A DNA stretch of 34,582 nucleotides from Octopus sinensis (Eukaryota). The position numbers and the translations under genes are program-made. Shown one piece after another: positions 5,974-33,200 of this stretch (positions are counted from its first letter, which is position 1; every line of letters starts with the position of its first letter). The notes under the pieces are model-generated. The model was not told where the DNA came from. It ran no database searches and saw nothing but the letters and a program-made list of their open reading frames with translations. The stretch is from NCBI RefSeq assembly GCF_006345805.1, contig NW_021831696.1, forward strand, positions 1 through 34,582, in the 5' to 3' direction.

Positions 5974-6607
5974 CTGCAATCCCTGTTGAAACTGAGCTTT
6001 TACTCTCTTTTTACTCTTATACATGTTTCAGTCATTTGACTGTGGCCATGCTGGAGCACCGCCTTTAGTCGTGCAAATCGACCCCGGGACTTATTCTTTG
6101 TAAGCCCAGTACTTATTCTATCGGTCTCTTTTGCTGAACTGCTAAGTGACGGGGACGTAAACACACCAGCATCGGTTGTCAAGCAATGCTAGAGGGACAA
6201 ACACAGACACACAAACACACACACACACACATACATATACATGCACATACATACATACATATATATACATATATACGACAGGCTTCTTTCAGTTTCTGTC
6301 TACCAAATCCACTCACAAGGCATTGGTCGGCCCGAGGCTATAGCAGAAGACACTTGCCCAAGATGCCACGCAGTGGGACTGAACCCAGAACCATGTGGTT
6401 GGTAGGCAAGCTACTTACCACACAGCCACTCCTGCAATGAGCATTAACAAGGCCCAGGGGCAGTTCTTGGATGTGGTAGGCCTGAACCTTACGGAACCAG
6501 TTTTTCCCCATGGCCAACTTTATGTAGGATGTTCAAGAGTCAGAAATCCTAATCATTTGTTTATTTATGCCCTTCATGAAAAGACCAAAAATGTCTATCA
6601 AGAAGCT
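5974..6607 (+). pseudogene. Helitron RepHel PIF1-like helicase C-terminal fragment, split by a SINE
   Basis: LQSLLKLSF (5974-6000) plus [36 protein letters not shown]...TKNVYQEA (6434-6607) matches the PIF1/Helitron motifs (A)MTINKSQGQ and HGQLYVAxSRV. Confidence 0.85.
6001..6433 (-). mobile_element. SINE family A, full length
   Basis: Head to tail reverse complement of family A, inserted in the helicase fragment. Confidence 0.88.
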
Positions 6608-6654
6608 CAACTGGTACTTATTTTATCGACCCCAGGAGGATTAAAGTCAGTGGC

Positions 6655-6940
6655 CGATGACAGCTCCGCCTCGACTGGCTTCCGTGCTGGTGGCACATAA
6701 AATACACCAATCCGACCGTGGCCGTTGCCAGCCTCGCCTGGCACTGAGCAGGTGGTACGTAAAAAGCACCCACTACACTCACGGAGTGGTTGGTGTTAGG
6801 AAGGGCATCCAGCTGTAGAAACATTGCCAGATCAGACTGGAGCCTGGTGCAGCTTCTGGCTTCCCAGATCCCTGGTCGAACCGTCCAACCCATGCTAGCA
6901 TGGAGAACGGACGTTAACGATGATGATGATGATGATGATG
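6655..6940 (+). mobile_element. RTE-type 3' fragment with (GAT)n tail
   Basis: Ends catgctagcatggagaacggacgttaacgatgatgat. A family B SINE remnant resumes at 6941. Confidence 0.75.
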
Positions 6941-7138
6941 TTAGCCTCGGTGGAATTTGAACTAAGAACATACAGATGGTCAAAATGCCATTTTCACCAT
7001 CAGCATGTTCATTTCATTTGGCATGCTAACGATTATTCTCCAAGTAAATATTAATAACTAGCATTATGACCCGGCATTGCCAGTTTGGTATAAATGTGTT
7101 AAATTAAAATTTGGGGTAATAAAACATACAATGACGTA

Positions 7139-7878
7139 TAGGCGCAGGAGTGGCTGTGTGGTAAGTAGCTTGTTTACCAACCACATGGTTCTGGGTTCAG
7201 TCCCACTGCATGGCACCTTGGGCAAGTGTCTTCTACTATAGCCTCGGGCCGACCAAAGCCTTATGAGTGGATTTGGTAGACGGAAACTGAAAGAAGCCCG
7301 TCGTATATATGTATATATATATATAGGCGCAGGAGTGGCTGTGTGGTAAGTAGCTTGTTTACCAACCACATGGTTCTGGGTTCAGTCCCACTGCGTGGCA
7401 CCTTGGGCAAGTGTCTTCTACTATAGCCTCGGGCTGACCAAAGCCTTATGAGTGGATTTGGTAGACGGAAACTGAAAGAAGCCCGTCGTATATATGTATA
7501 TATATATATATAGGCGCAGGAGTGGCTGTGTGGTAAGTAGCTTGTTTACCAACCACATGGTTCTGGGTTCAGTCCCACTGCGTGGCACCTTGGGCAAGTG
7601 TCTTCTACTATAGCCTCGGGCTGACCAAAGCCTTATGAGTGGATTTGGTAGACGGAAACTGAAAGAAGCCCGTCGTATATATGTATATATATGTGTGTGT
7701 GCATGTATGTTTGTGCGTCTGTGTTTGTCCCCCTAGCATTGCTTGACAACCGATGCTGGTGTCTTTATGTCCCCGTTACTTAGCAGTTCGGCAAAAGAGA
7801 CCGATAGAATAAGTACTGGGCTTACAAAGAATAAAGGTGGTGCTCCAGCATGGCTGCAAAGAGTAAAAAGAGTAAAGA
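7139..7878 (+). mobile_element. SINE family A with three tandem heads and one tail
   Basis: The head unit repeats at ~7139, ~7323 and ~7511 (about 186-bp period), separated by (AT)n. Confidence 0.88.
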
Positions 7879-8857: not shown

Positions 8858-8897
8858 ATGGACATTCTACAGTTCTGTGTGTTTGCATTGTGTTTTT
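8858..8897 (+). CDS. Exon 1: start codon and signal peptide (MDILQFCVFALCF)
   Basis: Acceptor ttttttttacag ends at 8854, ATG at 8858, donor T|gtaagt at 8898. The leftover T plus GT of the next exon gives Cys and continues the hydrophobic stretch to ...CLMKA, a plausible cleavage site. Confidence 0.8.
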
Positions 8898-10255: not shown

Positions 10256-12495
10256 CATATATACGACGGGCTTCTTTCAGTTTCCGTCTACCAAATCCAC
10301 TCACAAGGCTTTGGTCGGCCCGAGGCTATAGTAGAAGACACTTGCCCAAGGTGCCATGCAGTGGGACTGAACCCGGAACCATGTGGTTCGTAAGCAAGTT
10401 ACTTACCACACAGCCACTCCAACACCTATAATATATATGACGGGCTTCTTTCAGTTTCCGTCTACCAAATCCACTCACAAGGCATTGGTCGGCCTGGGGC
10501 TATAGCAGAAGACACTTGCCCAAGATGCCACGCACTGGGACTGAACCTGCAACCATGTGGTTGGTTAGCAAGCTACTTACCATACAGCCACTCCTGCTTT
10601 GTTAACAAAAAAAAAATTACTTTGACTAAGCAACGTTTTGTGTGTGTTATTTTCGTTGTTGTTGTTGGCCCTACTGGCTACATCATATATATTATAGGTG
10701 TTGGAGTGGCTGTGTGGTAAGTAGCTTGCTTACCAACCACATGGTTCCGGGTTCAGTCCCACTGCGTGGCATCTTGGGCAAGTGTCTTCTACTATAGCCT
10801 GGACATGTTCTCTTGTGATTGATTCAGCCTTGGGACAAACCTTTGTGGTGCCCAATGTGTTGCGGCATCTAGACCTGCCAGAGTCATTGCAGCAGTTGTG
10901 TAGTGTTACCGGGCATTGTACTGAGCTGTGAGGACCGGTTAATCTCTGGATTGATGTTGCCGGACTAGAAGTCATGCTTCCTGTCTATGTGGTGGAGATG
11001 GAAGATCAGTGTATTTTGCGATTGGATTATTCAGCGTCGATGGCTTGTCAGCTGGACTTGTGCTCCATGAAGCTTTCGGTGCAGGGAAGACCAGTCCCCG
11101 TTAAGGTATTAAAGTGCACCACCCTTTAGAACACAGTTTAAGCTATCTTTTCGTGGAAGAAGGTTTTTGTTCCTATAACCTGTGTTAATTCTGTAACCCT
11201 TTAAAATGGAAGATAAGAAACTTCATTTTCGGCACTTGATGCTCTGGGAACCAGACAAAAATTGCTGCAGCTCGGCCGATTTATAGTAGCTTACCTTTCG
11301 ACTTATTTTAGAACATGGTTGAGTCCATAAAATAGGATTTGACTACACCTCCATTTAGAGCACAGTTTAAGCTATCTTTTCGTGAAGAAGGTTTATGTTC
11401 CTATAACCTGTGTTAATTCTGTAACCCTTTAAAATGGAAGATTAGAAAGTTCTTTTTCGGCACTTGATGCTTTGGGAACCAGACAAAAATTGCTGCAGCT
11501 CGGCCGATTTATAGTAGTTTACCTTTCGACTTATTTTAGAACATGGTTGAGTCCATAAAATAGGATTTGACTACACCTCCATTTAGAGCACAGTTTAAGC
11601 TATCTTTTCATGGAAGAAGGTTTATGTTCCTATAACCTGTGTTAATTCTGTAACCCTTTTAAAATGGAAGATAAGAAAAGTTCATTTTCAACACAATGCT
11701 TTGGGAACCAGACAAAAATTGCTGCAGCTTGGCTGTGATGTGTTACCCCACCCTCCATATTCACCAGATATTGCTCCTTCGGACTTCCACTTATTCAAGT
11801 CTCTGCAGAATAGTCTTAATGGTAAAAATTTCAATTCCTTGGATGACGTAAAAAGATACCTTTATGAATTGGTTGCCATGAAACCCCACCAATTCTGGGA
11901 AGAGGGTATTTTCAAGTTAAAGGTAAGATAGAGATGCATTGTGCAACAAAATGGTTCATATTTGGTTGATTAAAAATATAATAGCAAATATTTATTTCCT
12001 TTAAAAATCGGCACGAACTTTCCGGACAACCCAATATATATTTCTTTACTGCCCAGAAGGGGCTAAACATAGAGGGGACAAACAAGGACAGACGAAGGGA
12101 TTGAGTCAATTATATCGACCCAGTGCGAAACTGGTACTTTATTTATCGACCCCGAAAGGATGAAAGGCAAAGTTGACTTCAGCGGAATTTGAACTCAGAA
12201 TGTAACGGCAGACGAAATACCGCTAAGCATTTCGCCAGGCGCGCTAACGTGTTTGCCAGCTCGCCAGAGTAATTATATCTACAGGTGTTAATTATTATAT
12301 AATTATTGTAACATAAATAATAAACAATCCTAGGCGCAGGAGTGGCTGTGTGGTAAGTAGCTTGTTTACCAACCACATGGTTCCGGGTTCAGTCCCACTG
12401 CGTGGCATCTTGGGCAAGTGTCTTCTACTATAGCCTCGGGTCGACCAAAGCCTTGTGAGTGGATTTGGTAGACGGAAACTGAAAGAAGCCCATCG

Positions 12496-12526
<31 letters not shown>

Positions 12527-15147
12527 ATATGTTTGTGTGTCTGTGTTTGTCCCCCTAGCATTGCTTGACAACCGATGCTGGTGTGTTTATGTCCCCGTTA
12601 CTTAGCGGTTCGGCAAAAGAGACTGATAGAATAAGTACCGGGCTTACAAAAGAATAAGTTCCGGGGTCGATTATCTTGACTAAAAGGCGGTGCTCCAGCA
12701 TGGCCGCAGTCAAATGACTGAAACAAGTAAAAGAGTAAACTTAGTGGTTCGGCAAAAGAGACCGATAGAATAAGTACTGGGCTTACAAAAGAATAAGTCC
12801 CGGGGTCGAGTTGCTCGGTTAAAGGCGGTGCTCCAGCATGGCCGCAGTCAAATGACTGAAACAAGTAAAAGAGTAAACTTAGCGGTTCGGCAAAAGAGAC
12901 CGATAGAATAAGTACCGGGCTTACAAAAGAATAAGTCCCGGGGGTCGAGTTGCTCGATTAAAGGTGGTGCTCCAGCATGGCCGCAGTCAAATGACTGAAA
13001 CAAGTAAAAGAGTAAAAGAGTAATCCTGTTGATCAAATGTAAAATGTGAAACTCAAATATTTTCATTTTCGTCTTTTACAGGTTTGATGAAAGCACGACT
13101 TTACAAAATTTTCCAAACTGGTAAATGGATTAACAAATATTTTTTCTGCTTTTAACCCTTTAGTGTTCGCATTATTCTGCCAAAATTAATCCTTTTTTAT
13201 CAACATTACCAAGCAATGCTAGGGGGACAAACACAGACATACAAACACACACACACATATATATATATATATACACATACACGACAGGCTTCTTTCAGTT
13301 TCTGTCTACCAAATCCACTCACAAGGCATTGGTCGGCCCGAGGCTATAGTAGAAGACACTTGCCCAAGGTGCCACGCAGTGGGACTGAACCCGAAACCAT
13401 GTGGTTGGTAAACAAGCTACTTACCACACAGCCATCATGCACATATATATATATATATACATATATACGACGGACTTCTTTCAGTTTCCGTCTACCAAAT
13501 CCACTCACAAGGCTTTGGTCGGCCCGAGGCTATAGTAGAAGACACTTGCCCAAGGTGCCACGCAGTGGGACTGAACCCGAAACCATGTGGTTGTAAACAA
13601 GCTACTTACCACACAGCCACTCATGCATATATATATATATACATATATACGACGGGCTTCTTTCAGTTTCCGTTACCAAATCCACTTACAAGGCTTTGGT
13701 CGGCCTGAGGCTATAGCAGAAGACACTTACCCAAGGTGCCACGCAGTGGGACTGAATCCGAAACCATGTGTTTGGTAAACAGCTACTTACCACACAGCCA
13801 CTCATGCATATATATATATATACATATATATACGACGGGCTTCTTTCAGTTTCCGTCTACCAAATCCACTCACAAGGCTTGGTCGGCCCGAGGCTATAGT
13901 AGAAGACACTCGCCCAAGGTGCCACGCAGTGGGACTGACCCGAAACCATGTGGTTGGTAAACAAGCTACTTACCACACAGCCACTCCTGCATATATATAT
14001 ATATATATATACATATATACGACGGGCTTCTTTCAGTTTCCGTCTACCAAATCCACTCACAATGCTTTGGTCGGCCCGAGGCTATAGTAGAAGACACTCG
14101 CCCAAGGTGCCACGCAGTGGGACTGAACCCGAAGCCATGTGGTTGGTAAACAAGCTACTTACCACACAGCCACTCATGCATATATATATATATATACATA
14201 TATACGACGGGCTTCTTTCAGTTTCTGTCTACCAAATCCACTCTGCCGTTACGTTCAGAGTTCAAATTCAGCCGAGGTCGACTTTGCCTTTCATACTTTC
14301 GGGGTCGATAAATAAAGTACCAGTTTCACACTGGGGTCGATGTAATCGACTTAATCCGTTTGTCTGTCCTTGTTTGTCCCCTCTATGTTTAGCCACTTGT
14401 GGGTAATAAAGAAATAGGTATTTCGTCTGCCGCTACGTTCTGAGTTCAAATTCCACCGAGGTCGACTTTGCCTTTCATCCTTCGGGGTCGATAAATAAAG
14501 TACCACTTTCGCACTGGGGTCGATGTAATCGACTTAATCCGTTTGTCTGTTCTTGTTTGTCCCCTCTATGTTTAGCCACTTGTGGGTAATAAAGAAATAG
14601 GTATTTCGTCTGCCGCTACGTTCTGAGTTCAAATTCCACCGAGGTCGACTTTGCCTTTCATCCTTCGGGGTCGATAAATAAAGTACCACTTTCGCACTGG
14701 GGTCGATGTAATCGACTTAATCCGTTTGTCTGTCCTTGTTTGTCCCCTCTATGTTTAGCCCCTTGTTAGCAATAAAGAAATATATTGTAGAACACACTTG
14801 CCCAAGGTCTCACACAGTGGGACTGAACCCAGAACCATGTGGTTGGAAAGCAAACTTCTTACCTGATTTCTTTATTTCAGAAAATGTTGTCCTCAATGGA
14901 AATACTACTCTCCACATTGAGGTACCAAATATGGAGAGACCAGTCACGTGGAGGTGTGGGACTCGGAAGTATGAGTGTGACAACGTATGCTATAAAGGGG
15001 CTGAATTTAGAGTGACACAGAGTGGAAATTCTTCTTCTCTCTGGATCCGAAAGGTAACTAAGGACCTTTTGGATTGGACATTTCATGACAACAACTACAA
15101 CATTGGAAAATTTGATTTGAAGGCAAACGGTAAGGAAATGATTTATA

Positions 15148-15232
<85 letters not shown>

Positions 15233-18200
15233 TAATAACAATAATAACAATAATAACAATAACAATAATAACAATAATAATAATAATAATAATAATATTA
15301 ATAATAATAATAATAATAATATTAATAATAATAATAACAATAATAATAATAACAATAATAATAATAATAACTATAATAATAATAATAATATAATAATAAT
15401 AATACTAATAATGTGATAGCGAAAGGGGCTGATTGCTACCTAACTCAGATACCAGGAAACCCAAAGGTGGCAGAAATTCAAAAGATAGTGCTCATGGGAA
15501 CTGCTCATATCCTACGCAAAATACTTTCTATGTAATCGCAAGTTTTAAAACAAACATAATTTTCTTATGGTTTCTTAAACATTCTCTAGAACAACACTAA
15601 GTACAAAACCAAATATATGACACCCTAGGCATAACACCAATATGAACTTCCAACCTGTTGTCTCTTGAGGTCTCTGGGTGAGACTTGGAGCCAACTTGTA
15701 CAAATGTAAAGCAAAAGTCAAACATAGAATAATAATAATATATAATAATAATATAATATAATAATAATATAATAATAATAATAATAATGATGATAATAAT
15801 AATAATTAATAATGATAATAATAATTAATAATGATGATAATAATAATTAATAATAATGATAATAATAACAATAATAATAATAATAACAATAATAATAATA
15901 ACAATAATAACAATAACAATAATAATAATAATATTAATAATAATAATAATAATAATCCTTTCTACTGGAGGCACAAGGTCTCAAATTTGTGGGAGGGGAC
16001 TGGTTGATTACATTGACCCTAGTGCATAACTGGTACTGTGGAGTTGGAGTCATGGAGTTGGAGTCGGAGTCATGGAGTCGGAGTCGTAGAGTCGGAGTCG
16101 CGGGGTCGGAGTCTCGGAGTCGTGGAGTCAGAGTCGTGGAGTCGGAGTTGGTAAAATAAACCACCGTCGCTTATTTAAATAGAGGAGTCAGAATCAATGT
16201 TTTTTTTGTTTCGACTCCACAGCCCTGCATAATACAGGTGAAACATTTTGGCCAGATATGGCCAGTTTAAATGCTACATGGTTGATGTTTGAACAGAGAA
16301 CCACATGCTCAATGACTTCTAAAACTACCACTGTATGTAATGCATAATTGTATCTACAGGTCTTAATTATTATTTAATTATTATAACATAAATAATAAAC
16401 AATCCTGTTGATCAAATATTAAATCTGAAAATCAACGTTTTTTTTTTTCATCTTTTACAGGTCCGACGAAAGTGGAAGCTTATGAAATTATCCAAAATGG
16501 TAAATGAATTAAGAAGCCTTTTTCTCCTTTTAAACTGAATATTACTGGCTCAGTGGTTAGAGCGTCGAGCTTACGATCGTGAGGTTGTGAGCTCGAATCC
16601 CGGACCGGGCTGCGTGTTGTGTTCTTGAGCAAGACACTTTATCTCACGTTGCTCCAGTTCACTCAGCTGTAGAAATGAGTTGCGACGTCACAGGTGCCAA
16701 GCTGTATCGGCCCTTGCCTTTCCCTTGGATAACATCGGTGATGTGGAGAGGGGAGGCCGGTATGTATGGGCGACTGCCGGTCTTCCATAAAAAACAACCT
16801 TGCCCAGACTTGTGCCTCAGAGGGTAACTCACTAGGTGCAAACCCATGGTCAGTGTCTGACCGAAGGGGGTCACCATATCACTGTGTTATATAAGGGTGG
16901 ATGGGAGTAACTAGAAAGGGAGAGATGATATAATCAGACATACACCCATGTATGATGATGTCATGCCTCAGTAAACATAAATCTCATTAAATTAAATCTA
17001 ATTAGGTTAAGTGTAATAAGGTGTCTAGTGGAGGCGCAATGGCCCAGTGGTTAGGGCAGCGGACTCGCGGTCATAAGATCGCGGTTTCCATTCCCAGACC
17101 GGGCGTTGTGCGTGTTTATTGAGCGAAAACACCTAAAAGCTCCACGAGGCTCCGGCAAGGGATGGTGGTGATCCCTGCTGTACTCTTTCACCACAACTTT
17201 CTCTCACTCTTACTTCCTGTTTCTGTTGTACCTGTATTTCAAGGGGCCGGCCTTGTCACTCTCTGTGTCACGCTGAATATCCCGGAGAACTACGTTAAGG
17301 GTACACGTGTCTGTGGAGTGCTCAGCCACTTGCACGTTAATTTCACGAGCAGGCTGTTCTGTTGATTCGGATCAACCGGAACCCTCATCGTCGTAACCGA
17401 CGGAATGCTTCCATCCAACAAATAAGGTGTCTAATTTCTTTTGATAATCTCTATTGCACATTTTCCCTTTTAATTTCCATGGCAAAAATATTAATCCTTC
17501 AGCATTCAGATTATTGTCAAATGGAATCCTTATTTATCCACATTGTTTTGGATTAATCATGGATTATCTCATAGCTTTGAGATTTCAATGATGTGATTGT
17601 TTATTGTTAGAATGACATTGCAGAGTAGGTGTGAGAGGCCAGATATGGCCAGTTTAATCCTTTAGCATTCAGATTATCTGTCAACTGTAATCCTTATTTA
17701 TTCACATTGTTTTGGATTAATCATGGATTATCTTGTAGTTTTGAGATTCAATGATGTGATTGTTTATTTTTAGAATGACATTGCAGAGTAGGTGTGAGAG
17801 GCCAGTTTAATCCTTTAGCATTCAGATTACTCTATCAAATGTCATCCTTATTTATCCACATTGTTTTGGATTAATCATGGATTATATCATAGCTTGAGAT
17901 TTCAATGATGTGATTGTTTATTTTTAGAATGACATTGCAGAGTAGGGTGAGAGGCCAGTTTAATCTTTAGCATTCAGATTATCTCCCAAATGTAATCCTT
18001 ATTTATTCACATTGTTTTTTGAATTAATCAGAAATTCAGAAATTATCTCATAGCTTTGTGATGTGACTGTTTCTGTTGAGAATGGCATGGTAGGTACGGT
18101 GGGAGAGGTCAGATGCGGGTATTTTGAACCTAAAGCAAATAGAATATTTGGGCATTGATTTACCAGTTTAAATGCTAAAGGGTTAAAATTGGGTGCAAGA

Positions 18201-19182
18201 TGAAAGCATGGCTTTGGTTAGGAACCATTCCCTAGGCCAACCAAAGCACGCGGAATTCTGTTCTTGATTCGACGGTCATTCGGAATGCTCACAGCAGCCA
18301 TATTCCGACCGCTCTATGTCACGCTGGTGAGACCCATATTGGAGTACGGGATTCAAGCCTCTTCTCCTTATCTCCTCAAAGACATACAGCATCTCGAAAG
18401 AGTCCAGAAGCTGGCTACCGCATGGTCATAGTCTCAAAAATTGTCCTATACGAAGAAAGGTGAGGACGCTTGACCTTTATTCTCTAGAAAAACGCCGCCG
18501 CCGTGGTGATCTCATTCTCGCCCACAACATCACAAGCGGAAAGTGTAACTCTCAAAAGAGCTGTTCTTCACTCCTGCTCCAGAGCATCGGCTGCGGGGTC
18601 ATTCCGAAAACCTCTACCAGCGACGATTTCATCTCAACCGAAGGAGAGGAGCTTTCTCCGTCCGGGTTGCGGATCCGTGGAACAAGCTGCCAGACGAGAT
18701 GGTGAAGATGCCGACGACCGCTTTGTTCAAAGCCTCCCTTGACCTCAAGTGTCCTGAACTCTTTATATGAACACCACCCTGTACTTAACTCCATGTCCCC
18801 CTACATGGCCTTGCTATTGCTTTTGAGCCAATTAACTAACAAAACTAATAACTAAAGCTTTGTGAATGGATTAGGTAGACAAAAGCTGAAATGAGCCTGA
18901 TATGTGTGTGTACATATATATAATAATAATAATTATTATTATTATAATGTTTTATTACATATATACTCTTTACTCTTTACTCTTTTACTTGTTTCAGTCA
19001 TTTGACTGCAGCCATGCTGGAGCACCGCCTTTAGTCGAGCAAATCGACCCCCGGGACTTATTCTTTGTAAGCCCAGTACTTATTCTATCGGTATCTTTTG
19101 CCGAACCGCTAAGTGACGGGGACGTTAAACACACCAGCATCGGTTGTCAAGCAATGCTAGGGGGACAAACACAGACACACAA

Positions 19183-19221
<39 letters not shown>

Positions 19222-22119
19222 TACGACAGGCTTCTTTCAGTTTCTGTCTACCAATCCACTCACAAGGCAATTGGTCGGCCCGGGGCTATAGATGAAGACA
19301 CTTGCCCAAGATGCCACGCAGTGGGACTGAACCCGGAACCATGTGGATGGTAAGCAGACTACTTATCACACTGCCACTCCTGTGTACCGCGACATCCTTT
19401 GTGTTCTGTTTTTTATTTATTTGATATATATATCCTCTCACCCTGACTTTATTGTACCTACCTATATATATATATATATATATATATACCGTAAATCTTG
19501 AGTATAATCCGTATTTTTTCCCAAATTTTAAAGATCAAAATCCCTAGTGCGTAAAATGAAAATTATTTCCTAAGCAATGTCCGAGTTCCTATTTGCTGTC
19601 CGGCAATGTTTATTCAGACGCATTTTGTGATGTCGGGTGCGAAAATACCTTAAGCTAAGCCTGAAAGCAATGAAGTCAAAAGAATCATCCATAACTTGCA
19701 TAAGCAACATTTATTAAACGTTATTACTGTTATTCTTTATTTTCTGCAAACAAAATGCACAAAAAAGCTACACGTTTGCATTATGTTATATATACAATAA
19801 TAATAAAGGACGTTACCGTATACAGTTTTACAAACCAAGGACGTGATATAGACCTCCTTGACTCAAGTTAGAGAAGGGGTGCGTATTATACACAAGGTTT
19901 AGGTTTTTCAGAGGTACAGACCCCTAAAAATCTCCTGCGTATAGTCCTCGAGGGCGGACTATTTGTAGTTGAATGAATCAACCCCAGTGCTTATTTATTT
20001 TAAACCAAATATTTATTTTATCGGTCTCTTTTGCCAAACCACTAAGTTATAGGTATGTAAATACAGCAAAACTGATTGTCAAGCAGTGGTGGGGGAAAAC
20101 ACAGACACACATGCACACACATGCACACAGACACACACATATACGATGGGCTTCTTTCAGTTTCCATCTACGAAATCTCACAAGGCTTTGGTCAGTCTGA
20201 GGCTATAGTAAAAGACGTGGAGGCGCAATGGCCCAGTGGTTAGGGCAGCGGACTCGCGGTCATAGGATCGCGGTTTCGATTCCCAGACCGGGCGTTATGA
20301 GTGTTTATTGAGCGAAAACACCTAAAAGCTCCACGAGCCTCCGGCAGGGGATGGTGGTGATCCCTGCTGTACTCTTTCACCACAACTTTCTCTCACTCTT
20401 ACTTCCTGTTTCTGTTGTACCTGTATTTCAAAGGGCCGGCCTTGTCACTCTCTGTGTCACGCTGAATATCCCCGAGAACTACGTTAAGGGTACACGTGTC
20501 TGTGGAGTGCTCAGCCACTTACACGTTTATTGAGCGAAAACACCTAAAAGCTCCACGAGGCTCCGGCAGGGGATGGTGGTGATCCCTGCTGTACTCTTTC
20601 ACCACAACTTTCTCTCACTCTTACTTCCTGTTTCTGTTGCACCTGTATTTCAAAGGGCCGGCCTTGTCACTCTCTGTGTCACACTGAATATCCCCGAGAA
20701 CTACGTTACGGGTACACGTGTCTGTGGAGTGCTCAGCCACTTACACGTTAATTTCACGAGCAGGCTGTTCCGTTGATTCGGATCAACTGGAACCCTCGTC
20801 GTCATAACCGACAGAGTGCTTCCATCCATTTCAAGGGGCCGGCCTTGTCACTCTCTGTGTCACGCTGAATATCCCCGAAACTACGTTAAGGGTGCACGTG
20901 TCTGTGGAGTGCTCAGCCACTTACACGTTAATTTCACGAGCGGGCTGTTCCGTTGATTCGGATCAACTGGAACCCTCGTCGTCATAACCGACAGAGTGCT
21001 TCCATCCATTTCAAGGGGCCAGCCTTGTCACTCTCTGTGTCACGCTGAATATCCCCGAGAACTATGTTAAGGGTGCACGTGTCTGTGGAGTGCTCAGCCA
21101 CTTACACGTTAATTTCACGAGCGGGCTGTTCCGTTGATTCGGATCAACCGGAACCCTCGTCGTCATAACCGACAGAGTGCTTCCATCCATTTCAAGGGGC
21201 CGGCCTTGTCACTCTCTGTGTCACGCTGAATATCCCCGAGAACTACGTTAAGGGTGCACGTGTCTGTGGAGTGCTCAGCCACTTACACGTTAATTTCACG
21301 AGCGGGCTGTTCCGTTGATTCGGATCAACCGGAACCCTCGTCGTTGTAACCGACAGAGTGCTTCCATAGTAAAAGACACTTGCCCAAGGTGCTGTGCAAT
21401 GTACAATGGTGGAGCATATTTCTCCTCGTGCATTTTGAGTATAGAAAGTGAAGCAGATTCAGAACATTGTCTGAGAATATACACTTTCAAGTCTTCTTCA
21501 AAATTGCAGCCGTTTTTAAACAAAATGTTCTGCAAATTCTGTTGAACTACTATTCTGAGGTTCCAAATTTCGCTGAGGTCAACTTTGCCGTTCATCCTTC
21601 TGGGGTCAATTAATTAAGTACCAGTTGAGTACTGTGGTTGATATAATCGACTGTGCCCCCTCCCTCCATTTCGGGCCTTGTGCCTATAACAGAAAGGTTT
21701 ATCATTATTATTATTATTATCATTAATATTATATTATTATTATTATTATATTATTATTAATTATTATTATTATTTTATTATTATTATTATTATTATTATT
21801 ATATTATTATTATTTTATTATTATTATCATTATTTTATTAATATTATTATTATTATTATGATTATTATTATTATCATTATCATTAATTATTATGAATTAT
21901 TATTATTATTATTATTATTATTAGGATTATTATTATTATCATCATTATTATTATGATTATTATTATTATTATTATTATTATTATCATTAATTATTAGTAT
22001 TATTATTATCATTATTATTATGAATTATATTATTATTATTATTATTATTATTTTATTATTATTATTATTATATTATTATTATTATTATATTATTATTATT
22101 ATCATTAATTATTATGAAA

Positions 22120-22166
<47 letters not shown>

Positions 22167-22235
22167 ATGAATTATTATGAATTATTATTATTATTATTAA
22201 TTATTATCATTAATTATTATCATTAATTATTATGA

Positions 22236-22276
<41 letters not shown>

Positions 22277-22644
22277 CATTAATTATTATGAATTACTGTG
22301 CCTGACGTCAAATCTGCGCCCATTAAACCTGGATCCATGTGGTAGAAAAGTAAACATTTTACCTGGTTTCTTTATTTCAGATATTGGTGATCTCAGTGTA
22401 AGCGCTACTCTACAGGTTGAAATACCAAACATGAAAAGACCGACCGTTTGGAAATACAACAATTATAAATACGAATGTGATCGGACATGCGCTAACAGCG
22501 CCGAATACAGAGTGACGCAGAAGGGAGATATATCGACTCTTTGGATCCGAAACGTAACAAAGGAACGATTGACTTGGAAATTTGAAGAAGACAACCTCAA
22601 CTATGAAAAATTTGATTTGAAGATACACAGTAAGGAAATGATTT

Positions 22645-22683
<39 letters not shown>

Positions 22684-22686
22684 GTG

Positions 22687-22722
<36 letters not shown>

Positions 22723-22736
22723 TTAATAATAATGAT

Positions 22737-22768
<32 letters not shown>

Positions 22769-22797
22769 GATAATGATAATAATTAATAATGATAATG

Positions 22798-22829
<32 letters not shown>

Positions 22830-22950
22830 AATAATTAATAATGATAATAATTAATAATAATAATAATAATGATAATGATGATAATTGATGATAATAATAA
22901 TAATAATAATAATTCATCATAATGATAATAATAATTCATAATAATTAATG

Positions 22951-23008
<58 letters not shown>

Positions 23009-23104
23009 TAATAAAATAATAATAATAATAATAATAATATAATAATGATAATAATAATTAATAATAATGATAATAATAATAATTAATAATTAATAATAAT
23101 GATA

Positions 23105-23153
<49 letters not shown>

Positions 23154-23201
23154 TGATAATAATAATAATAATAATAATAATTATGATAATAATAATTAAT
23201 G

Positions 23202-23248
<47 letters not shown>

Positions 23249-25768
23249 AATGATAAACCTTTCTGTTATAGGCACAAGGCCTGAAATTGAAGGGAGGGGG
23301 CATAGTCGATTATATCAACCACAGTACTCAACTGGTACTTAATTAATTGACCCCAGAAGGATGAACGGTAAAGTTGACCTCAGCGAAATATGGAACTCAG
23401 AATGTAGCGACAGGCAAAATACCGCTAAGCATTTCGTCCAGCATGCTAACAATCCTGATGGTGGTGGTGGTGGTGGCAGTGGAGGTGGCAGCAGCGGTGG
23501 TGGTTTTAGTGATGGTTGTGGCAGTGGAGGTGATGGTTTTAGTGGTGGTGGTGGTGGTGGTGGTTTTGGTAGTGGTGGTGGTGGTGGTTTTAGTGGTGGT
23601 GGTGGTGGTGGTGGTTTTAGAGGTGGTGATGGTTTTAGTGGTGGTGGTGGTGGTGGTGGTTTTAGTGGTGGTAATGGTTTTAGTGGTGGTGGTGGTTTTA
23701 GTGGTGGTGATGGCTTTAGCGGTGGTGGTTTTGGTGGTGGTGGTGGTGGTTTTAGTGGTGGTGATGGTTTTAGTGGTGGTGGTTTTGGTGGTGGTGGTGG
23801 TGGTGGTTTTAGTGGTGGTGGTTTTGGTGGTGGTGGTGATGGCTTTAGTGGTGGTGGTTTTGGTGGTGGTGGTGGTTTTGATGGTGGTGATGGTTTTAGT
23901 GGTGGTGGTGGTGGTGGTGGCTTTAGTGGTGGTGATGGCTTTAGTGGTGGTGGTTTTGGTGGTGGTGATGGTTTTAGTGGTGGTGGTTTTGGTGGTGGTG
24001 ATGGTTTTAGTGGTGGTGGTTTTGGTGGTGGTGATGGTTTTAGTGGTGGTGGTTTTGGTGGTGGTGATGGTTTTAGTGGTGGTAGTTTTGGTGGTGGTGG
24101 TGGTGTTGGTTTTGGTAGTAGTGGTGGTGTTGATGGTTGTGGCAGTGGAGGTGGCGGCGGTGTTGGTAGTTGTGGTGGTGGTTTTGGTGGTGGTGGTGAT
24201 GGTGGTGGTGGTTCAATGCCTTCACTCTAACTGCCACTATATACATATAATTATGCAATCATTGTAACATAAACTGCAATCAATCCTGATGATCAAATGT
24301 AAAATCTGAAAATGAAAAATTTTTGTTTTCTTCTTTTTCAGGTTCAACAAGAACAGAAATATACAAAATTACTCAAAATGGTAAATAGATTGACAACCTT
24401 TTTTCCCTCTTTTATACTAGACCCTATCTTTTCAATTCTGCCTTCTATTTCATTCTCTTAAATCATAGTTTTTAACCATTTTTTAAAACCTTTCTCTGAT
24501 CAGCTCAAGTTAAGTTAAGTTAAGTTAAGTTAATTATTTGGCTCAAAAAGCAAAAAGCAAGACCATGTAGGGGGACATGGAGTTAAGTACAGGGAGGGTG
24601 TTCATGCAAAGAGTTCAGGCCATTTCTGGTCAAGGGAGACTTTGAACCGAGCAGTCGTCGGCATCTTCACTATCTCGTCCGGCAGCTTATTCCACGGATC
24701 CGCAACCCGGACGGAGAAAGCCCCTCTATAGAGAATAATGGTCAAGCGTCTTACCACACAGCCACCCCTATGCCTATATTTATATTTAGAAGGTCATTTG
24801 TTATGGTCATTTACCATCAGTCTTGCATTTATAAAGCGCTTAGCTGTACAGGTTAGTTAAGTTAAGTTGAGTTAATTTTTTGGCTCAAAAAGCAAAAAGC
24901 AAGGCCATGTAGAGGGACATGGAGTTATGTACAGGGAGGGTGTTCATGCAAAGAGTTCAGGCCATTTGTGGTCAAGAGAGACTTTGAACCGAGCGGTCGT
25001 CGGCATCTTCACTATCTCGTCCGGCAGCTTATTCCACGGATCCGCAACCCGGACAGAGAAAGCCCCTCTCTTTCGATTGAGATGAAATCGTTGTAGATAG
25101 AGCTTTATATATATATATATATATTCAATTCAATTCAATTCAATTTTTATTGGCTCAAAAAGCAAAAGCAAGGCCATGTAGGGGGACATGGAGTTATGTA
25201 CAGGAAGAGTGTTCATGCAAAGAGTTCAGGCCATTTCTGGTCCAGAGAGACCTTGAACTGAGCGGTTGTCGGCATCTTCACTATCTCGTCCAGCAGCTTA
25301 TTCCACGGATCCGCAATCCAGACGGAGAAAGCCCCTCTCCTTCGATTGAGATGAAATCGTCACACATAGAGCTTTTCAGAATGACCCCGCAGCCTACGCT
25401 CTGGAACAGGAGTGAAGAACAGCTCTTTTGAGAGGTTACACTTTCTGCTTATGATGTTTCCTTTGGAGATCATAAAAAATAACCATCACCATTTAATGGC
25501 CTCGATGCCAGCGCCGCCTTGACTGGCTTTTGTGCCGGTGGCATGTAAAAAGCACCAATCTGATCATGGCCATTGCCAGCCTCACCTTGCACCTGTGCCG
25601 GTGGCACGTAAAAAGCACCCACTACACTCTCGGAGTGGTTGGCATTAGGAAGGGCATCCAGCTGTAGAAACACTGCCTGATCAGACTGGAGTGTGGTGCA
25701 GCCTCCTGGCTTCCCAGATCCCCGTCGACCCGTCCAACCCATGCTAGCATGGAGAACGGACGTTAAAC

Positions 25769-25826
<58 letters not shown>

Positions 25827-26308
25827 CTGGCATCAGTTGGATAATTATTAAGGATCCATCTAATTCTGTTTTTAATTAATTGGGCTTTAACTCTCTCTGT
25901 AACTTTCTTGACCTGTTCCACTGGGTTGAAGGCATCTCCTTTACACTTGTAACATCTGACTACAATGCTGCTACACCAGTTGTTAATGTGACACCTTTCT
26001 GTTCAGCTTGGTTTACAGTGACGAGGTTGTATCTTACTTGGCAAAATCCTAGTAAACAAAAGGCCCATTTATATGGTGTCCTTTATTTCCAGTTCACTTG
26101 GTAAAACATGTCTAGGCACCTTGTTACTCAATAGACTGACATATTAGGTGCAGAAGTGGCTGTGTGGTAAGTAGCTTGCTAACCAACCTCATGGTTCTGG
26201 GTTCAGTCCCACTGCGTGGCATCTTGGGCAAGTGTCTTCTGCTATAGCCCCGGGCCAACCAATGCCTTGTGAGTGGATTTGGTAGATGGAAACTGAAAGA
26301 AGCCTGTC

Positions 26309-26343
<35 letters not shown>

Positions 26344-27331
26344 GGCATAGGAGTGGCTGTGTGGTAAGTAGCTTGCTAACCAACCTCATGGTTCCGGGTT
26401 CAGTCCCACTGTGTGGCATCTTGGGCAAGTGTCTTCTGCTATAGCCTCGGGCCGACCAAAGCCTTGTAAGTGGATTTGGTAGACGGAAACTGAAAGAAGC
26501 CTGTCGTATATATGTGTATATATATATATATATGTATGTGTGTGTTTGTGTGTCTGTGTTTGTCCCCCTAGCATTGCTTGACAACCGATGCTGGTGTGTT
26601 TATGTCCCCGTTACTTAGCGGTTTGGCAAAGGAGACCGATAGAATAAGTACTGGGCTTACAAAAGAATAAGTCCCGGGGTTGAGTTGCTCGATTAAAGGC
26701 GGTGCTCCAGCATGGCCGCAGTCAAAATGACTGAAACAAGTAAAAGAGTACAAAGAGTATTAGGACCAGAAGAGTGTCCAGTTATGCACAAAGAAAACTC
26801 TGCTCCCAAGCAAGGAAAAGTAGGTGTTAAAATGGCAATGATGATGAAATCTTTCATATGGAAAACCAATCAATAATATTGATTTGTCTTTTTATTTCAG
26901 GACCAGTTGCATTAGGGGGCAGTGTTACACTTCATATTGAAGTAGCCGGGATGAAAAGAATTGTTGGCTGGAAAAACGACTATGGAAGATATGAATGTGA
27001 TATGACTTGTTATAATCGTAGTAACCATGAAGTTACACAAAATGGTAACTCATCGAAGCTTTTGATCCGAAATGTCACCAAACAAGATTTGACTTGGTAT
27101 TTTTGTGACTTGAATCTCTGCTCTGGAAATTATTCCTTAAAGATAAAAGGTAAGTGAATTACTTTTGCTAATAATAATAATAATAATAACGATAATGATA
27201 ATAATAATAATAATGATAATGATGATAATAATGATAATGATAATGATGATAATAATAATAATAATGATAATAATAATAATATAATAATAATAATAATGAT
27301 GATAATAATAATGATAATGATAATAATAATG

Positions 27332-27379
<48 letters not shown>

Positions 27380-27413
27380 TAATAATAATATAATAATGAT
27401 GATGATGATGATG

Positions 27414-27445
<32 letters not shown>

Positions 27446-27464
27446 GATAATGATAATAATAATA

Positions 27465-27555
<91 letters not shown>

Positions 27556-29237
27556 TAATAATAATAATAATAATAATGATGATAATGATGATAATAATAA
27601 TGATGATGATAATAATGATAATCATCATCATCATCATCGTCGTTTAACGTCCGTTCTCCATGCTAGCATGGGTTGGACGGTTCGACCGGGGTTCTGGGAA
27701 GCCAGAAGGCTGCACCAGGCTCCAGTCTAATTTGGCAATGTTTCTACAGCTGGATGCCCTTCCTAACGCCAACCACTCCGTGAGTGTAGTGGGTGCTTTT
27801 TACGTGCCACCTGCACAGGTGCCAGGCGGGGCTGGCAACGGCCACGGTCAGATTGGTGTATTTTATGTCCCACTGGCACGGAAGCCAGTCGAGGCGGTGC
27901 TGGCATCGGCCACGAGTCGGATAGTGCTTTTTACGTACCACCAGACCAGGGATCCTGGCTGGTTCAATTCGATTTCGATTTCGCTTGCCCCAACATGTCT
28001 TCACAAGCAAAGGGGGTTGGCAAGGGTGCCTGTCGTACGGTCGCATTGGAGTATTTTACGTGCCACGGCCACGAGTCGGATAGTGCTTTACGTACCACCA
28101 GACCAGGGATCCTGGCTGGTTCAATTCGATTTCGATTTCGCTTGCCCCAAATGTCTTCACAAGCAAAGGGGGTTGGCATGGGTGCCTGTCGTACGGTCGC
28201 ATTGGAGTATTTTACGTGCCACGGCCCCGAGTCGGATAGTGCTTTTTACGTACCACCAGGCCAGGGATCCTGGCTGGTTCAATTCGGTTTCGATTTCGCT
28301 TGCCCCAACATGTCTTCGCAAGCATGGGGGGTTGGGATGGGTGTCTGTCGTCGGATGAGGTTCTATATCGACTTCGCTTGCCTCAACCGGTCTTTGTGTC
28401 CAAGGGAGGAAAGGCATTCATAAGTGGGCTGGGCTCACTTGTCCTGCCTGGTCTTCTCACGTACAGAATATTTCCAAAGGTCTCGGTCTCTGGTCATTTC
28501 CTCAGTGAGGCCTAAAGTTCGAAGGTCGTGCTTCACCACCTCGTCCCAGGTTTTCCTGGGTCTACCTCTTCCACGGGTTCCCTCAACTGCTAGGGATTGG
28601 CACTTTCTCACACACCTATCTTCATCCATTCTCGCCACATGACCATACCAGCGCAATCGTCTCTCTTGCACACCACAACTGATGCTTCTTAGGTACAACA
28701 TTTCTCTCAAGGTGCTAACGCTCTGTCGAGTATGTACACTGACATTACACATCCATCGGAGCATACTGGCTTCATTCCTCACGAGCTTACGCATGTCCTC
28801 AGCAGTCACAGCCCATGTTTCGCTACCATGTAGCATGGCTGTTCGTACACACGCATCATACAGTCTGCCTTTTACTCTGAGCGAGAGGCCTAGTCACCAG
28901 CAGCAGAGGTAAGAGCTCCCTAAACTTTGCCCAGGCTATTCTATTCTAGCAGTTACACTTTCAGCGCACCACCCCCATACTGACTTGGTCACCTAGATAA
29001 CGGAAGCTATCAACTACTTCTAGTTTTTCCCCCTGGAAAGTGACGGAAGTTGTTTTCTGCAGATTTTCGGAGGTTAATGCTCCCGAGCATCTGCCACATA
29101 CAAAAACTATCTTCCCAGTTAGCCTACTTTGACTTGGCTGCCCTCTTATGTGTCCATAGCTTACACTGGGTACATCTTATAGAGTTTCTACCTACACCTT
29201 TTACAGATCGAGCAGGGCCATAGAAAAGGTGTAGGTA

Positions 29238-30227: not shown

Positions 30228-33200
30228 TATTATCATTAATTATTATGAATTATTATTATTATTATTAGTTTATTATTATTATTATCATTAAATTATGAAT
30301 TATTATTATATATTATTATATTATTATTATTATTATTATTATTATCATTAATTATTATGAATTATTATTATTATTATTGTTATTATCATTATTATTATTA
30401 TTATTATTATCATTAATTATTATGAATTATTATTATTATTATTATATTATTATTATTATTATTATTATTATTATCATTAATTATTTGAATTACTGTGCCT
30501 GACGTCAAATCTGCGCCCATTAAACCTTTTGTTTAATTGTTCTGTTGGACAACCAACATAAATCAAGCATGTTTCATACATTCTGCTGCATACACCAAAT
30601 GGGAATCTCTCCATGTCCCACTTATATTATATTCGTAACACTAGCTAAATTAAGTTAAGTTAATTTTTGGGCTCAAAAAGCAAAAAGCAAGGTCATGTAG
30701 GGGGACATGGAGTTATGTACAGGGAGGGTGTTCATGCAAAGAGTTCAGGCCATTTCTGGTCAAGAGAGACTTTGAACCGAGCGGTCATCAGCATCTTCAC
30801 TATCTCGTCCGGCAGCTTATGCCATGGATCCGCAACCCGGACGGAGAAAGCCCCTCTCCTTTGATTGAGATGAAATCGTTGCAGATAGAGCTTTATATAA
30901 ATATATATTCTATTCAATTCAATTTTTATTGGCTCAATAAGCAAAAGCAAGGCCATGTAAGGGGACATGGAGTTATGTACAGGGAGGGTGTTCATGCAAA
31001 GAGTTCAGACCATTTCTGGTCAAGAGAGACTTTGAACTGAGCGGTCGTCGGCATCTTCACTATCTCGTCCGGCAGCTTATTCCACGGATCCGCAACCCGG
31101 ACGGAGAAAGCCCCTCTCCTTCGATTGAGATGAAATCGTCGTAGATAGAGCTTTTCGGAGTGACCCCGCAGCCGACGATCTGAATGATAACTAAGTTATT
31201 TTACTAATTCTTTGTTATATTTAAAGTAATTGAAAGAAACAACAGAGCATCTCAACAGAAATATGGTAACGAAAGGGTTAAATTATATAATAGAGAAACA
31301 ATTCTTAACCCTTTTGATACCAACCCGGCTGAAACCACCTTTGGCTCTGTGGTACAAATGTCTTGTTTTCATAAGTTCTGAATTAAAATCTTCCACCAAA
31401 CCTTAGTCACAATTTATGTTCCTAACACTAGCTTAATGATAACCAAGTTATTTTTCTAAATTCTTTGTTATATTTAAAGTAATTGAAAGAAACACAGAGC
31501 ATCTCAACAGAAATATGGCAACGAAAGGGTTAAAATATATAATAGAGAAACAATTCTTAACCCTTTCATTACCAACCCGGCTGAAACCACCTTTGGCTCT
31601 GTGGTACAAATGTCTTGTTTTCATAAGTTCTGAATTAAAATCTTCCACCAAACCTTAGTCACATTTTATGTTCCTAAAACTAGCTTAATGGTAACTAAGT
31701 TATTTTACTAAATTCTTTGTTATATTTATAATTAATTGAAAGAAACACAGAGCATCTCAACAGAAATATGGTAACAAAAGGGTTAAAATATATAATAGAG
31801 AAACAATTCTTAACCCTTTCATTACCAACCCGGCTGAAACCACCTCTGGCTCTGAGTACAAATGTCTTGTTTTCATAAGTTCTGAATTAAAATCTTCCAC
31901 CAAACCTTAGTCACAATTTATGTTCCTAACACTAGCTTAATGATAACTAAGTTATTTTACTAAATTCTTTGTTATATTTAAAGTAATTGAAAGAAACACA
32001 GAGCATCTCAACAGAAATATGGTAACAAAAGGGTTAAATTATATAATAGAGAAACAATTCTTAACCCTTTTGATACCAACCCGGCTGAAACCACCTCTGG
32101 CTCTGAGTACAAATGTCTTGTTTTCATAAGTTCTGAATTAAAATCTTCCACCAAACCTTAGTCACAATTTATGTTCCTAACACTAGCTGAATGATAACCA
32201 AGTTATTTTACTAAATTCTTTGTTATATTTAAAGTAATTGAAAGAAACACAGAGCGTCTCAAAATAAATACAGTAACGAAAGGGTTAATAAAGAAATCTG
32301 TCTTTTATTAAAAAAACGAAAGGTACATGTTTCATTGTTTATCTTTTGCAGATCAAACAACTAATGGACCAAGACCCCGCATACCAGTCTATGCTGTTGT
32401 TATCCTTTCCCTACTTGGATTTGTAGTCATCCTTCTCATAATCTGCTTCTTCATATACAGATACAACCCTTGCAACATGAGGGAAACTTTTGTCACCTAC
32501 TACACATCTTGTATAGAACACCGGAGACATAGGAATGTTATATATAGACCACCAAAGACATAAGAATGTTATATATATATATATAGTGGAGGCGCAATGG
32601 CCCAGTGGTTAGGGCAGCGGACTCGCGGTCGTAGGATCGCGGTTTCGATTCCCAGACCGGGCGTTGTGAGTGTTTATTGAGCGAAAACACCTAAAAGCTC
32701 CACGAGGCTCCGGCAGGGGATGGTGGTGATCCCTGCTGTACTCTTTCACCACAAACTTTCTCTCACTCTTACTTCCTGTTTCTGTTGTACCTGTATTTCA
32801 AGGGGCCAGCCTTGTCACTCTCTGTGTCACGCTGAATATCCCCGAGAACTACGTTAAGGGTACACGTGTCTGTGGAGTGCTCAGCCACTTGCAGGTTAAT
32901 TCCACGAGCAAGCTGTTCCGTTGATCGTATCAGCTGGGACCCTCATCATCGTAACCGATGGATTACAGAGAAAAAAATGAGCGATAACATCTAAAAGCTC
33001 CACGAGGCTCCGGCAGGGGATGGTGGTGATCCCTGCTGTACTCTTTCACCACAAACTTCTCTCACTCTTACTTCCTGTTTCTGTTGTACCTGTATTTCAA
33101 GGGGCCAGCCTTGTCACTCTCTGTGTCACGCTGAATATCCCCGAGAACTACGTTAAGGTACACGTGTCTGTGGAGTGCTCAGCCACTTGCAGGTTAATTC

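Follow-up and report, generated by a model that had tools for sequence, protein, structure and literature searches.

The stretch analysed here (the window) is an octopus contig, NW_021831696.1, of 34,582 nucleotides of AT-rich, repeat-laden animal DNA, and carries on its plus strand what is very probably a single gene for a membrane protein with three immunoglobulin (Ig)-like domains. A reading made from the letters alone had placed three related Ig-like repeats at 14881-27149, and these limits are correct to the base: Ig exon 1 opens at 14881 and Ig exon 3 closes at 27149. The repeats are open segments of 249 nt, all in phase 1-1, which is the classic layout of Ig-domain exons, with a polypyrimidine tract and AG on the 5' side of each and GTAAG on the 3' side. 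When the three exons were compared with each other (tblastn), they shared 45-49% amino acid identity with E-values of 1e-20 to 1e-27. This similarity far exceeds chance and the repeat is real; a fourth copy is not present in the window.

Five further coding exons were located on the plus strand by mapping homologous octopus proteins back to the window with tblastn. All eight exons are open, with AG/GT junctions and compatible phase 1 joins. They are listed below, where numbers such as P0001 denote related protein models and AF2 denotes AlphaFold2 models, scored by predicted local distance difference test (pLDDT) and predicted template modelling score (pTM).

8858..8897, plus strand: first coding exon, with the ATG and signal peptide (MDILQFCVFALCF plus the first base of the next codon) and the donor GTAAGT; found by tblastn with the N-termini of relatives.
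13082..13120, plus strand: microexon M1, end of the signal peptide and A strand of domain 1 (LMKARLYKIFQT); tblastn to P0001 residues 22-33, AG/GT, AF2 strand 20-22 at low confidence.
14881..15129, plus strand: Ig exon 1, strands A'/B to G of domain 1, with C52 (two residues after the Trp, W+2) and the C-x3-C pair C59/C63; 98.4% identical in nucleotides to the exon of the O. sinensis ortholog.
16461..16499, plus strand: microexon M2, linker and A strand of domain 2 (PTKVEAYEIIQN); tblastn, AG/GT, phase 1-1.
22381..22629, plus strand: Ig exon 2, domain 2, whose sole cysteines are the C-x3-C pair C155/C159; splice sites and phase, AF2 model (pLDDT 85.1, pTM 0.76), Foldseek.
24342..24380, plus strand: microexon M3, linker and A strand of domain 3 (STRTEIYKITQN); tblastn, AG/GT, AF2 strand 213-217 (YKITQ).
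26901..27149, plus strand: Ig exon 3, domain 3, with C-x3-C C251/C255, the F-strand Y-x-C cysteine C287 and the FG-loop cysteine C292; Pfam I-set 23.0 bits alone, BLASTP to obscurin-like Ig at 32-33%.
32352..32563, plus strand: last coding exon, with a short stalk, the transmembrane helix (IPVYAVVILSLLGFVVILLIICFFIY), a 32-residue cytoplasmic tail and the stop; tblastn to the transmembrane regions of P0003, P0004, P0006 and P0007, AF2 helix 314-339.

The spliced coding sequence is 1116 nt long, open up to its stop, and encodes 371 amino acids from exons that span 8858-32563 (+). In order, the protein comprises the signal peptide, three pairs of microexon and Ig exon, the stalk, one hydrophobic helix and the tail, and its ectodomain holds seven N-x-S/T sequons. 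The three microexons, each of 39 nt and in phase 1-1, lie 1.8-5.9 kb 5' of an Ig exon and supply the linker between domains as well as the A strand (LYKIFQT, AYEIIQN, IYKITQN); strands 20-22 and 213-217 of the full-length AF2 model belong to these microexon-encoded parts. Microexon and Ig exon together make one complete domain of ~92 amino acids. Microexon M2 may be optional, because exactly its equivalent is missing from the protein models P0003 (O. sinensis LOC115230628 isoform X2), P0005 and P0006. By eye, no motif of the immunoreceptor tyrosine-based inhibition or activation type (ITIM/ITAM) was seen in the tail, YRYNPCNMRETFVTYYTSCIEHRRHRNVIYRPPKT.

The closest protein is that of O. sinensis LOC115227428, with 83% identity over the three Ig exons (93% for domain 1, 82% for domain 2 and 95% for domain 3), and over its full length the window protein shares 80% identity with P0001. 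The LOC115227428 locus, on a 36.5-kb contig, is colinear with the window, and its RefSeq model joins the same exons. At the nucleotide level, Ig1 and Ig3 are 98% and Ig2 89% identical to this locus (Ig2 is L001 24512-24760), and the pooled ratio of nonsynonymous to synonymous differences (pN/pS) is 0.56 on few changes. The last exon sits at the same position as that of the O. sinensis gene and is much more diverged: it is ~65-70% identical (L001 35147-35595), with indels that shift the frame of the tail, between flanks of intron and 3' sequence that are 92-99% identical.

These data bear on whether the exons form one functional gene at all, or rather three single-domain genes or a pseudogene decaying in a repeat-rich region. 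Arrays of short interspersed nuclear elements (SINEs) together with microsatellites dominate the region, and the tail frame of the last exon differs from that of the O. sinensis ortholog, as decay would have it. Set against this are the eight open exons with their splice junctions and compatible phases, the RefSeq model that joins the same exons, the 98% conservation of Ig1 and Ig3 with pN/pS below 1, and the lack of any signal-peptide exon between the Ig exons when the N-termini of relatives were searched by tblastn. We consider either form of this alternative highly improbable.

We next turn to the fold. The motifs quoted in the sequence-only reading are all present: TLHIEV, TLQVEI and TLHIEV at strand B of domains 1-3, VTW, VW and GW at strand C, LWIRKVTK, LWIRNVTK and LLIRNVTK at strand E, the cysteine pairs ECDNVC, ECDRTC and ECDMTC, and FCDLNLC in domain 3. 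The same reading had inferred for the repeats an Ig-like fold of the V type, which might be convergent or a new subtype. An AF2 model built from the exon-2 translation and an alignment of 33 family domains was confident (scores as listed above) and folded as a beta-sandwich with strands B, C, C', D, E, F and G; no C'' strand was predicted in it. When this model was compared with the PDB using Foldseek, the top 50 matches were all Ig domains and none was an FN3 or cadherin domain. The leading matches are I-set domains (titin M1/I10/I21/I27, obscurin, MyBP-C and twitchin Ig26), with template modelling (TM) scores up to 0.72 and root mean square deviations of 2.2-2.7 A over 76-79 residues. A full-length model, used solely for its secondary structure and for matches to tandem Ig proteins, is all-beta: eight strands are seen in domain 1, and five to seven are resolved in domains 2 and 3, where confidence is lower; Foldseek placed it with titin I9-I11 (E 7.8e-11), followed by myomesin, DSCAM, NCAM and CD22. 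The Ig-like fold thus held up, and these models make a Greek-key Ig beta-sandwich of strands A B E D / A' G F C C', with no C'', a well-supported prediction.

Sequence comparison points to the same clan. The three exons concatenated match Pfam I-set (PF07679) with 40.1 bits and an E-value of 3.9e-10, above the Pfam gathering cut-off of 23.7 bits; as a match to a defined Pfam family this is real but weak, and just 4 of 33 single family domains reached I-set at E<0.1. A hidden Markov model (HMM) of the family domain, searched against 1.84 billion representative proteins, recovered the small proteins of the family and, in addition, giant repeat proteins, with E-values down to 1e-28 and up to 18 matched stretches. 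The giant proteins are obscurin and obscurin-like proteins that carry 10-36 Pfam I-set domains each. By BLASTP, domain 3 is 32-33% identical to a fish obscurin-like fragment from strand B to strand F, and the alignment keeps G-x-x-V-T-L, W, L-x-I-x-N-V and D-x-x-x-Y-x-C in register. The C-strand Trp aligns with the obscurin Trp and is found in 35/35 domains of our family alignment, which comprises the complete domains of the window protein and 17 relatives and underlies the octopod domain counts that follow.

A beta-sandwich of another kind (FN3-like, cadherin-like or a further Greek-key fold) that mimics Ig motifs by chance would account for single-domain Pfam scores below threshold and for the fact that most family members have no precomputed Pfam domain. 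It would leave unexplained the 18 stretches of obscurin Ig repeats matched by the family profile, the alignment from B to F with Ig motif positions in register, and a Foldseek list that holds Ig domains only; we give it next to no chance. As judged from these profile and pairwise alignments, the octopus domain is detectably homologous to canonical Ig domains and not convergent with them. It is a very divergent, unannotated subfamily inside the Ig/I-set clan and no new fold. The proposal of a new Ig subtype survives in the weak sense of a divergent, lineage-restricted subfamily with an unusual disulfide pattern, one that lies within the known clan.

The domain type differs from the one first proposed. 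In the models the domain is I-set-like rather than V-set, because it is only ~92 residues long where a V-set domain has ~110, lacks a C'' strand and finds its nearest structures among I-set domains; V-set (PF07686, cut-off 26 bits) reached 14.3 bits at best on the window exons, and there only over the E-F region. It shares with the I-set domains of obscurin, titin, MyBP-C and twitchin a fold of strands A, B, C, C', D, E, F and G in ~90 residues, the C-strand Trp and, recognisably in domain 3, the E-F motif L-x-I-x-N-V...D-x-x-x-Y-x-C, and I-set is its best match by Pfam, HMMER and Foldseek alike. A Cys pair in strands B and F is typical of extracellular Ig domains but is not required of an I-set domain, and I-set domains of the titin type also work without this disulfide. 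Unlike the cytoskeletal I-set repeats, the octopus domain is extracellular and glycosylated. It further differs from I-set domains in an insertion of ~6 residues between C and C' that carries the invariant C-x3-C, in an A strand encoded on a separate 39-nt microexon and in an F-strand Trp that replaces the Tyr corner in domains 1 and 2.

CD2, CD58 and SLAM, and the N-domains of CEACAM, are surface V domains that lack the B-F disulfide and belong to fast-evolving, tandemly duplicated receptor families, and the sequence-only reading had drawn the analogy with CD2/SLAM and CEACAM. If the octopus domain were a V-set domain of this kind, allied to these proteins in function and evolution, one would expect the missing canonical disulfide and the type I membrane protein that we find. 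Antibody light-chain variable (VL) domains do occur among the Foldseek matches (TM-score 0.6-0.72), human CD2 came third in a profile search of the PDB at a non-significant E of 2.8, and a Cys-rich second domain in some members recalls, by eye, the V+C2 layout. The V-set scores of 14-19 bits at most, confined to the E-F strands, compare with 40 bits for I-set, however, and the length of the domain, the unpredicted C'' strand and the best structural matches all favour I-set. CD2, CD58, SLAM and CEACAM are V-set with C' and C'' strands; they lack a C-x3-C and have no significant sequence relationship to the octopus domain. In CD2/SLAM, the V domain precedes a C2 domain that has two disulfides; the window protein departs from this layout, since its three domains are alike and none is of the C2 type. 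Kinship with these receptors is therefore improbable; the analogy holds as one of working, that of a surface Ig protein without a core disulfide in an expanding family, and fails as one of membership.

The cysteines set the family apart. The column of the B-strand Cys is occupied by Ile, Val, Thr or Phe and by Cys in 0/35 domains, so that the canonical B-F disulfide is missing, as the first reading of the letters had it; its claim that C-x3-C is invariant also stands, at 35/35 domains, one or two of them spaced C-x4-C. Alignment by BLASTP with obscurin-like Ig domains places GGSVTLHIEV opposite GGSVTLHCEL, and DLTWYFC opposite DAGQYSC/DSGDYSC. The B-strand Cys is thus replaced by Ile, and the first Cys of the domain 3 C-x4-C, described earlier as an additional pair, is the canonical F-strand Cys: the two cysteines are there, the first of them being no addition. 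Likewise, the D-x-G-x-Y-x-C motif, altered in the family, is not fully lost in domain 3, where DLTWYFC reads as D-x-x-x-Y-x-C and keeps Asp, Tyr and Cys; the B-strand partner is what is missing.

Other cysteines are restricted to subtypes of the domain. A Cys at W+2 in the C strand is present in 16 domains, in 12 of them together with a second Cys immediately ahead of strand F (pre-F), and the pre-F Cys occurs alone in none. An F-strand Cys is found in 12/35, exclusively domains of the domain 3 type, and is accompanied in 10 by an FG-loop Cys five residues on. In the window protein, domain 1 has Leu at the usual partner site of its W+2 cysteine C52, as does the O. sinensis orthologue; domain 2 has the C-x3-C only, and domain 3 has the C-x3-C and the F/FG pair. 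From the alignment, the family appears to have one universal pair of cysteines and two subtype-specific pairs, none of which is canonical. The F strand also bears a second near-invariant Trp.

In the exon-2 model, strand C' ends with the first Cys of C-x3-C, and four residues further along the second Cys forms an isolated bridge; the motif falls within the insertion relative to obscurin domains, which counts six residues in the C-C' region. Most likely, the two would form a local disulfide and so stiffen the chain where it begins to cross from C' to D. Could they instead bind a metal, act as a redox site or link chains into covalent dimers? Cysteines at i and i+4 are able to chelate metals, and domain 2, with no other Cys, has a sequence compatible with inter-chain pairing. 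Yet the motif belongs to an extracellular, N-glycosylated domain, its two cysteines always occur together (35/35 octopod and 9/9 abalone domains), and the domain offers no conserved His, Asp or additional Cys in a position to serve as a further metal ligand; the model, moreover, sets the first Cys at the C' end and the second four residues on, in the turn that follows. A metal, redox or inter-chain role is accordingly a doubtful option.

Taken together, these observations are in all likelihood explained by a single octopus gene whose product is a type I membrane protein with three divergent I-set-like domains, a member of an octopod family with a putative role in recognition or adhesion. The repeats would be exons 3, 5 and 7 of this single plus-strand gene, and the product would be N-glycosylated, with a short, unconserved tail. 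In place of the core B-F disulfide, the domain would rely on aliphatic and aromatic packing by Ile or Val at the B position, the C-strand Trp and the F-strand Trp, and a local C-x3-C disulfide would stiffen the C' edge. Binding would be the task of the ectodomain, in a surface recognition or adhesion receptor of a fast-diversifying family. An unconserved, motif-free tail suggests signalling through partners, or else an adhesion or decoy role.

Several observations count against this account. Single exons remain below the I-set cut-off (23.0 bits for domain 3, 15 bits for domain 2 and no match for domain 1), and a profile search of PDB sequences gave nothing significant, the best match being titin at E 0.42. 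The confident exon-2 model lacks an A strand, and the full-length model, built on an alignment of 8 sequences, is poor, with a mean pLDDT of 53. The co-occurrence of the subtype-specific cysteines (tables 12/4/0/19 and 10/2/0/23, Fisher p ~1e-6) is uncorrected for shared ancestry. A pN/pS below 1 on few substitutions does not demonstrate diversifying selection, and the recognition or adhesion role, which we consider likely, is drawn from architecture alone.

The family comprises ~30 clusters at 50% identity, and its named members, from O. sinensis, O. bimaculoides, O. vulgaris and Argonauta hians, are all 'uncharacterized' or 'hypothetical'. The domain HMM, built from the three window domains, scores these at 166-171 bits and the domains of relatives at 74-163 bits. 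The window protein has the features of the family, namely the Trp, Y-x-C-x3-C, S-T-L-W-I-R-N-V-T, T-W-x-F-x-D, a microexon paired with a 249-nt exon, a signal peptide and an anchor. Members carry one to four domains and end in a transmembrane helix with a tail, in a tailless hydrophobic stretch that by eye resembles a glycosylphosphatidylinositol (GPI) signal, or in intron read-through. In the last group, predicted isoforms of P0002, P0010, P0037 and P0050 read past the donor into (AAT)n tracts and end in ...GKEITSANNNNNNSF; these are either secreted forms or annotation artefacts. Within a species, many members lie on the same scaffold, which measures 21.3 Mb in O. sinensis, 34.6 Mb in O. vulgaris and 12.0 Mb in O. 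bimaculoides, and the family is thus clustered. Such clusters and the mix of transmembrane and GPI-signal-like members recall the IgLON proteins and lineage-specific clusters of the immunoglobulin superfamily. IgLON/neurotrimin and NCAM Ig1-3 likewise have three tandem I-set-like domains, and neurotrimin, IgLON5 and NCAM are among the Foldseek matches; their domains have canonical disulfides, however, and are not orthologous to the octopus family.

Two kinds of model depart from the usual architecture. P0015, P0017, P0034, P0036, P0049 and P0051, from Octopus and Argonauta, have a Cys-rich second domain of ~90 amino acids (…KPKIE…C…C…C…C…C…) after an N-terminal C-x3-C domain; it has no Pfam match and to the eye recalls the C2-type domain of CD2/SLAM. 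P0043, an O. sinensis 'zinc finger protein 239-like' model of the C2H2 type, has a C-terminal C-x3-C Ig-like domain that scores 85 bits with the family HMM and is most likely a fused gene model.

The taxonomic range was drawn from the exhaustive search of representative proteins and the names of the 30 clusters. Outside octopods, matches resembling the family were confined to abalone multi-domain membrane proteins, all uncharacterized (H. rufescens LOC124119024 and LOC124122840, H. cracherodii XP_071095869 and XP_071094808; Haliotis). A combined octopus and abalone profile gave no match at E<=0.001 in a word-indexed homolog search. The abalone proteins (P0045, P0061, P0069, P0072) have 2-5 repeats of ~90 amino acids followed by a transmembrane helix. 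As in octopus, the B- and F-strand cysteines are missing, and the C-strand Trp, the C-x3-C in the same columns, S-T-L-x-I and T-W-x-I-x-D are present; the abalone repeats differ in keeping D-x-G before the F strand and in an extra Cys pair, CPGG...VCQL. Alignment of octopus with abalone domains by hhalign gave a probability of 87.8% (E 3e-6) at an identity of just 15-20%, which makes homology of the two sets of sequences probable. Somewhat speculatively, the C-x3-C domain may be an old molluscan Ig subtype, as yet undescribed and common to cephalopods and gastropods, in which a local disulfide at the C' edge replaces the B-F disulfide and which was amplified in octopods to give a clustered receptor family that diversifies rapidly, with exon mosaicism and optional microexons, through gain or loss of the A strand and linker, adding variety. 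If this were true, the family would be an invertebrate counterpart of the vertebrate multigene recognition receptors, immune or neuronal.

Divergence is uneven along the gene. Between intragenic copies, the Ig exons are 55-67% identical and the 40-nt intron flanks 55-95%, with downstream values inflated by the (AAT)n tract. Between Ig1 and Ig2 the flanks exceed the exons (85% and 95%), whereas upstream of Ig3 they are only 55-60% identical. For the three microexons, identity is 80-82% in the 40 nt on their 5' side and 64-67% in the microexons themselves. Together with the uneven divergence from the O. sinensis locus, this mosaic suggests gene conversion or exon exchange among paralogues; it also fits a faster change of coding than of splice-flanking sequence, and does not prove positive selection. 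Directly upstream of the acceptors of Ig exons 1 and 2 (14800-14880 and 22300-22380) lies a SINE-like segment (…GAACCCAGAACCATGTGGTTGGAAAGCAAACTTCTTACC…). Its two copies are 85% identical over the last 40 nt, so either it was already there when the unit was duplicated or it plays a part in the splice region.

The introns are otherwise filled with transposon debris and tandem arrays, and many SINE copies occur as arrays of 180-300 bp. Long (AAT/ATA)n microsatellites start less than ~20 nt from the donor of each Ig exon (15145-15412, 22645-23256 and 27169-27622). Within the intron between Ig exon 2 and M3, at 23459-24212, Tandem Repeats Finder detected a TGG-type minisatellite with periods of 15-51. 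A Gly-rich open reading frame (ORF) of 289 amino acids in the same intron (GGDGFSGGGFGGG..., 23361-24230) was considered as an exon and rejected as this same minisatellite, a degenerate one of the (TGG)n type, with a GC skew of 0.73. Further features of the window are as follows.

6395-6700, plus strand: helicase C-terminal fragment with a weak Pfam helicase match (19.7 bits), which we take to be Helitron/Pif1-like.
7137-7692, 13256-14243, 14242-14782, 26155-26539, 31183-32288 and 32676-33557: tandem arrays.
11701-11931, plus strand: presumably akin to the C-terminus of a mariner-type transposase; no Pfam match.
28435-28836, minus strand: presumably akin to a retroelement ORF; no Pfam match.

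Ig domains without a core disulfide are already known. What seems new here is a whole family of extracellular domains that lack the B-strand Cys in every case examined and have an invariant C-x3-C at the C' edge; Pfam barely detects it, and we did not find it in the literature searched, which was queried with the gene identifiers and for expansions of Ig-like genes in octopus or other cephalopods. The result is currently at the level of annotation. A large, clustered octopod family with variable domain number and anchor and with uneven exon divergence has the features of lineage-specific recognition receptors. To our knowledge, octopuses lack an antibody system, and protocadherins are so far the main molecules linked to recognition by their neurons; the family is therefore a reasonable candidate for a part in immunity or in cell-cell recognition.

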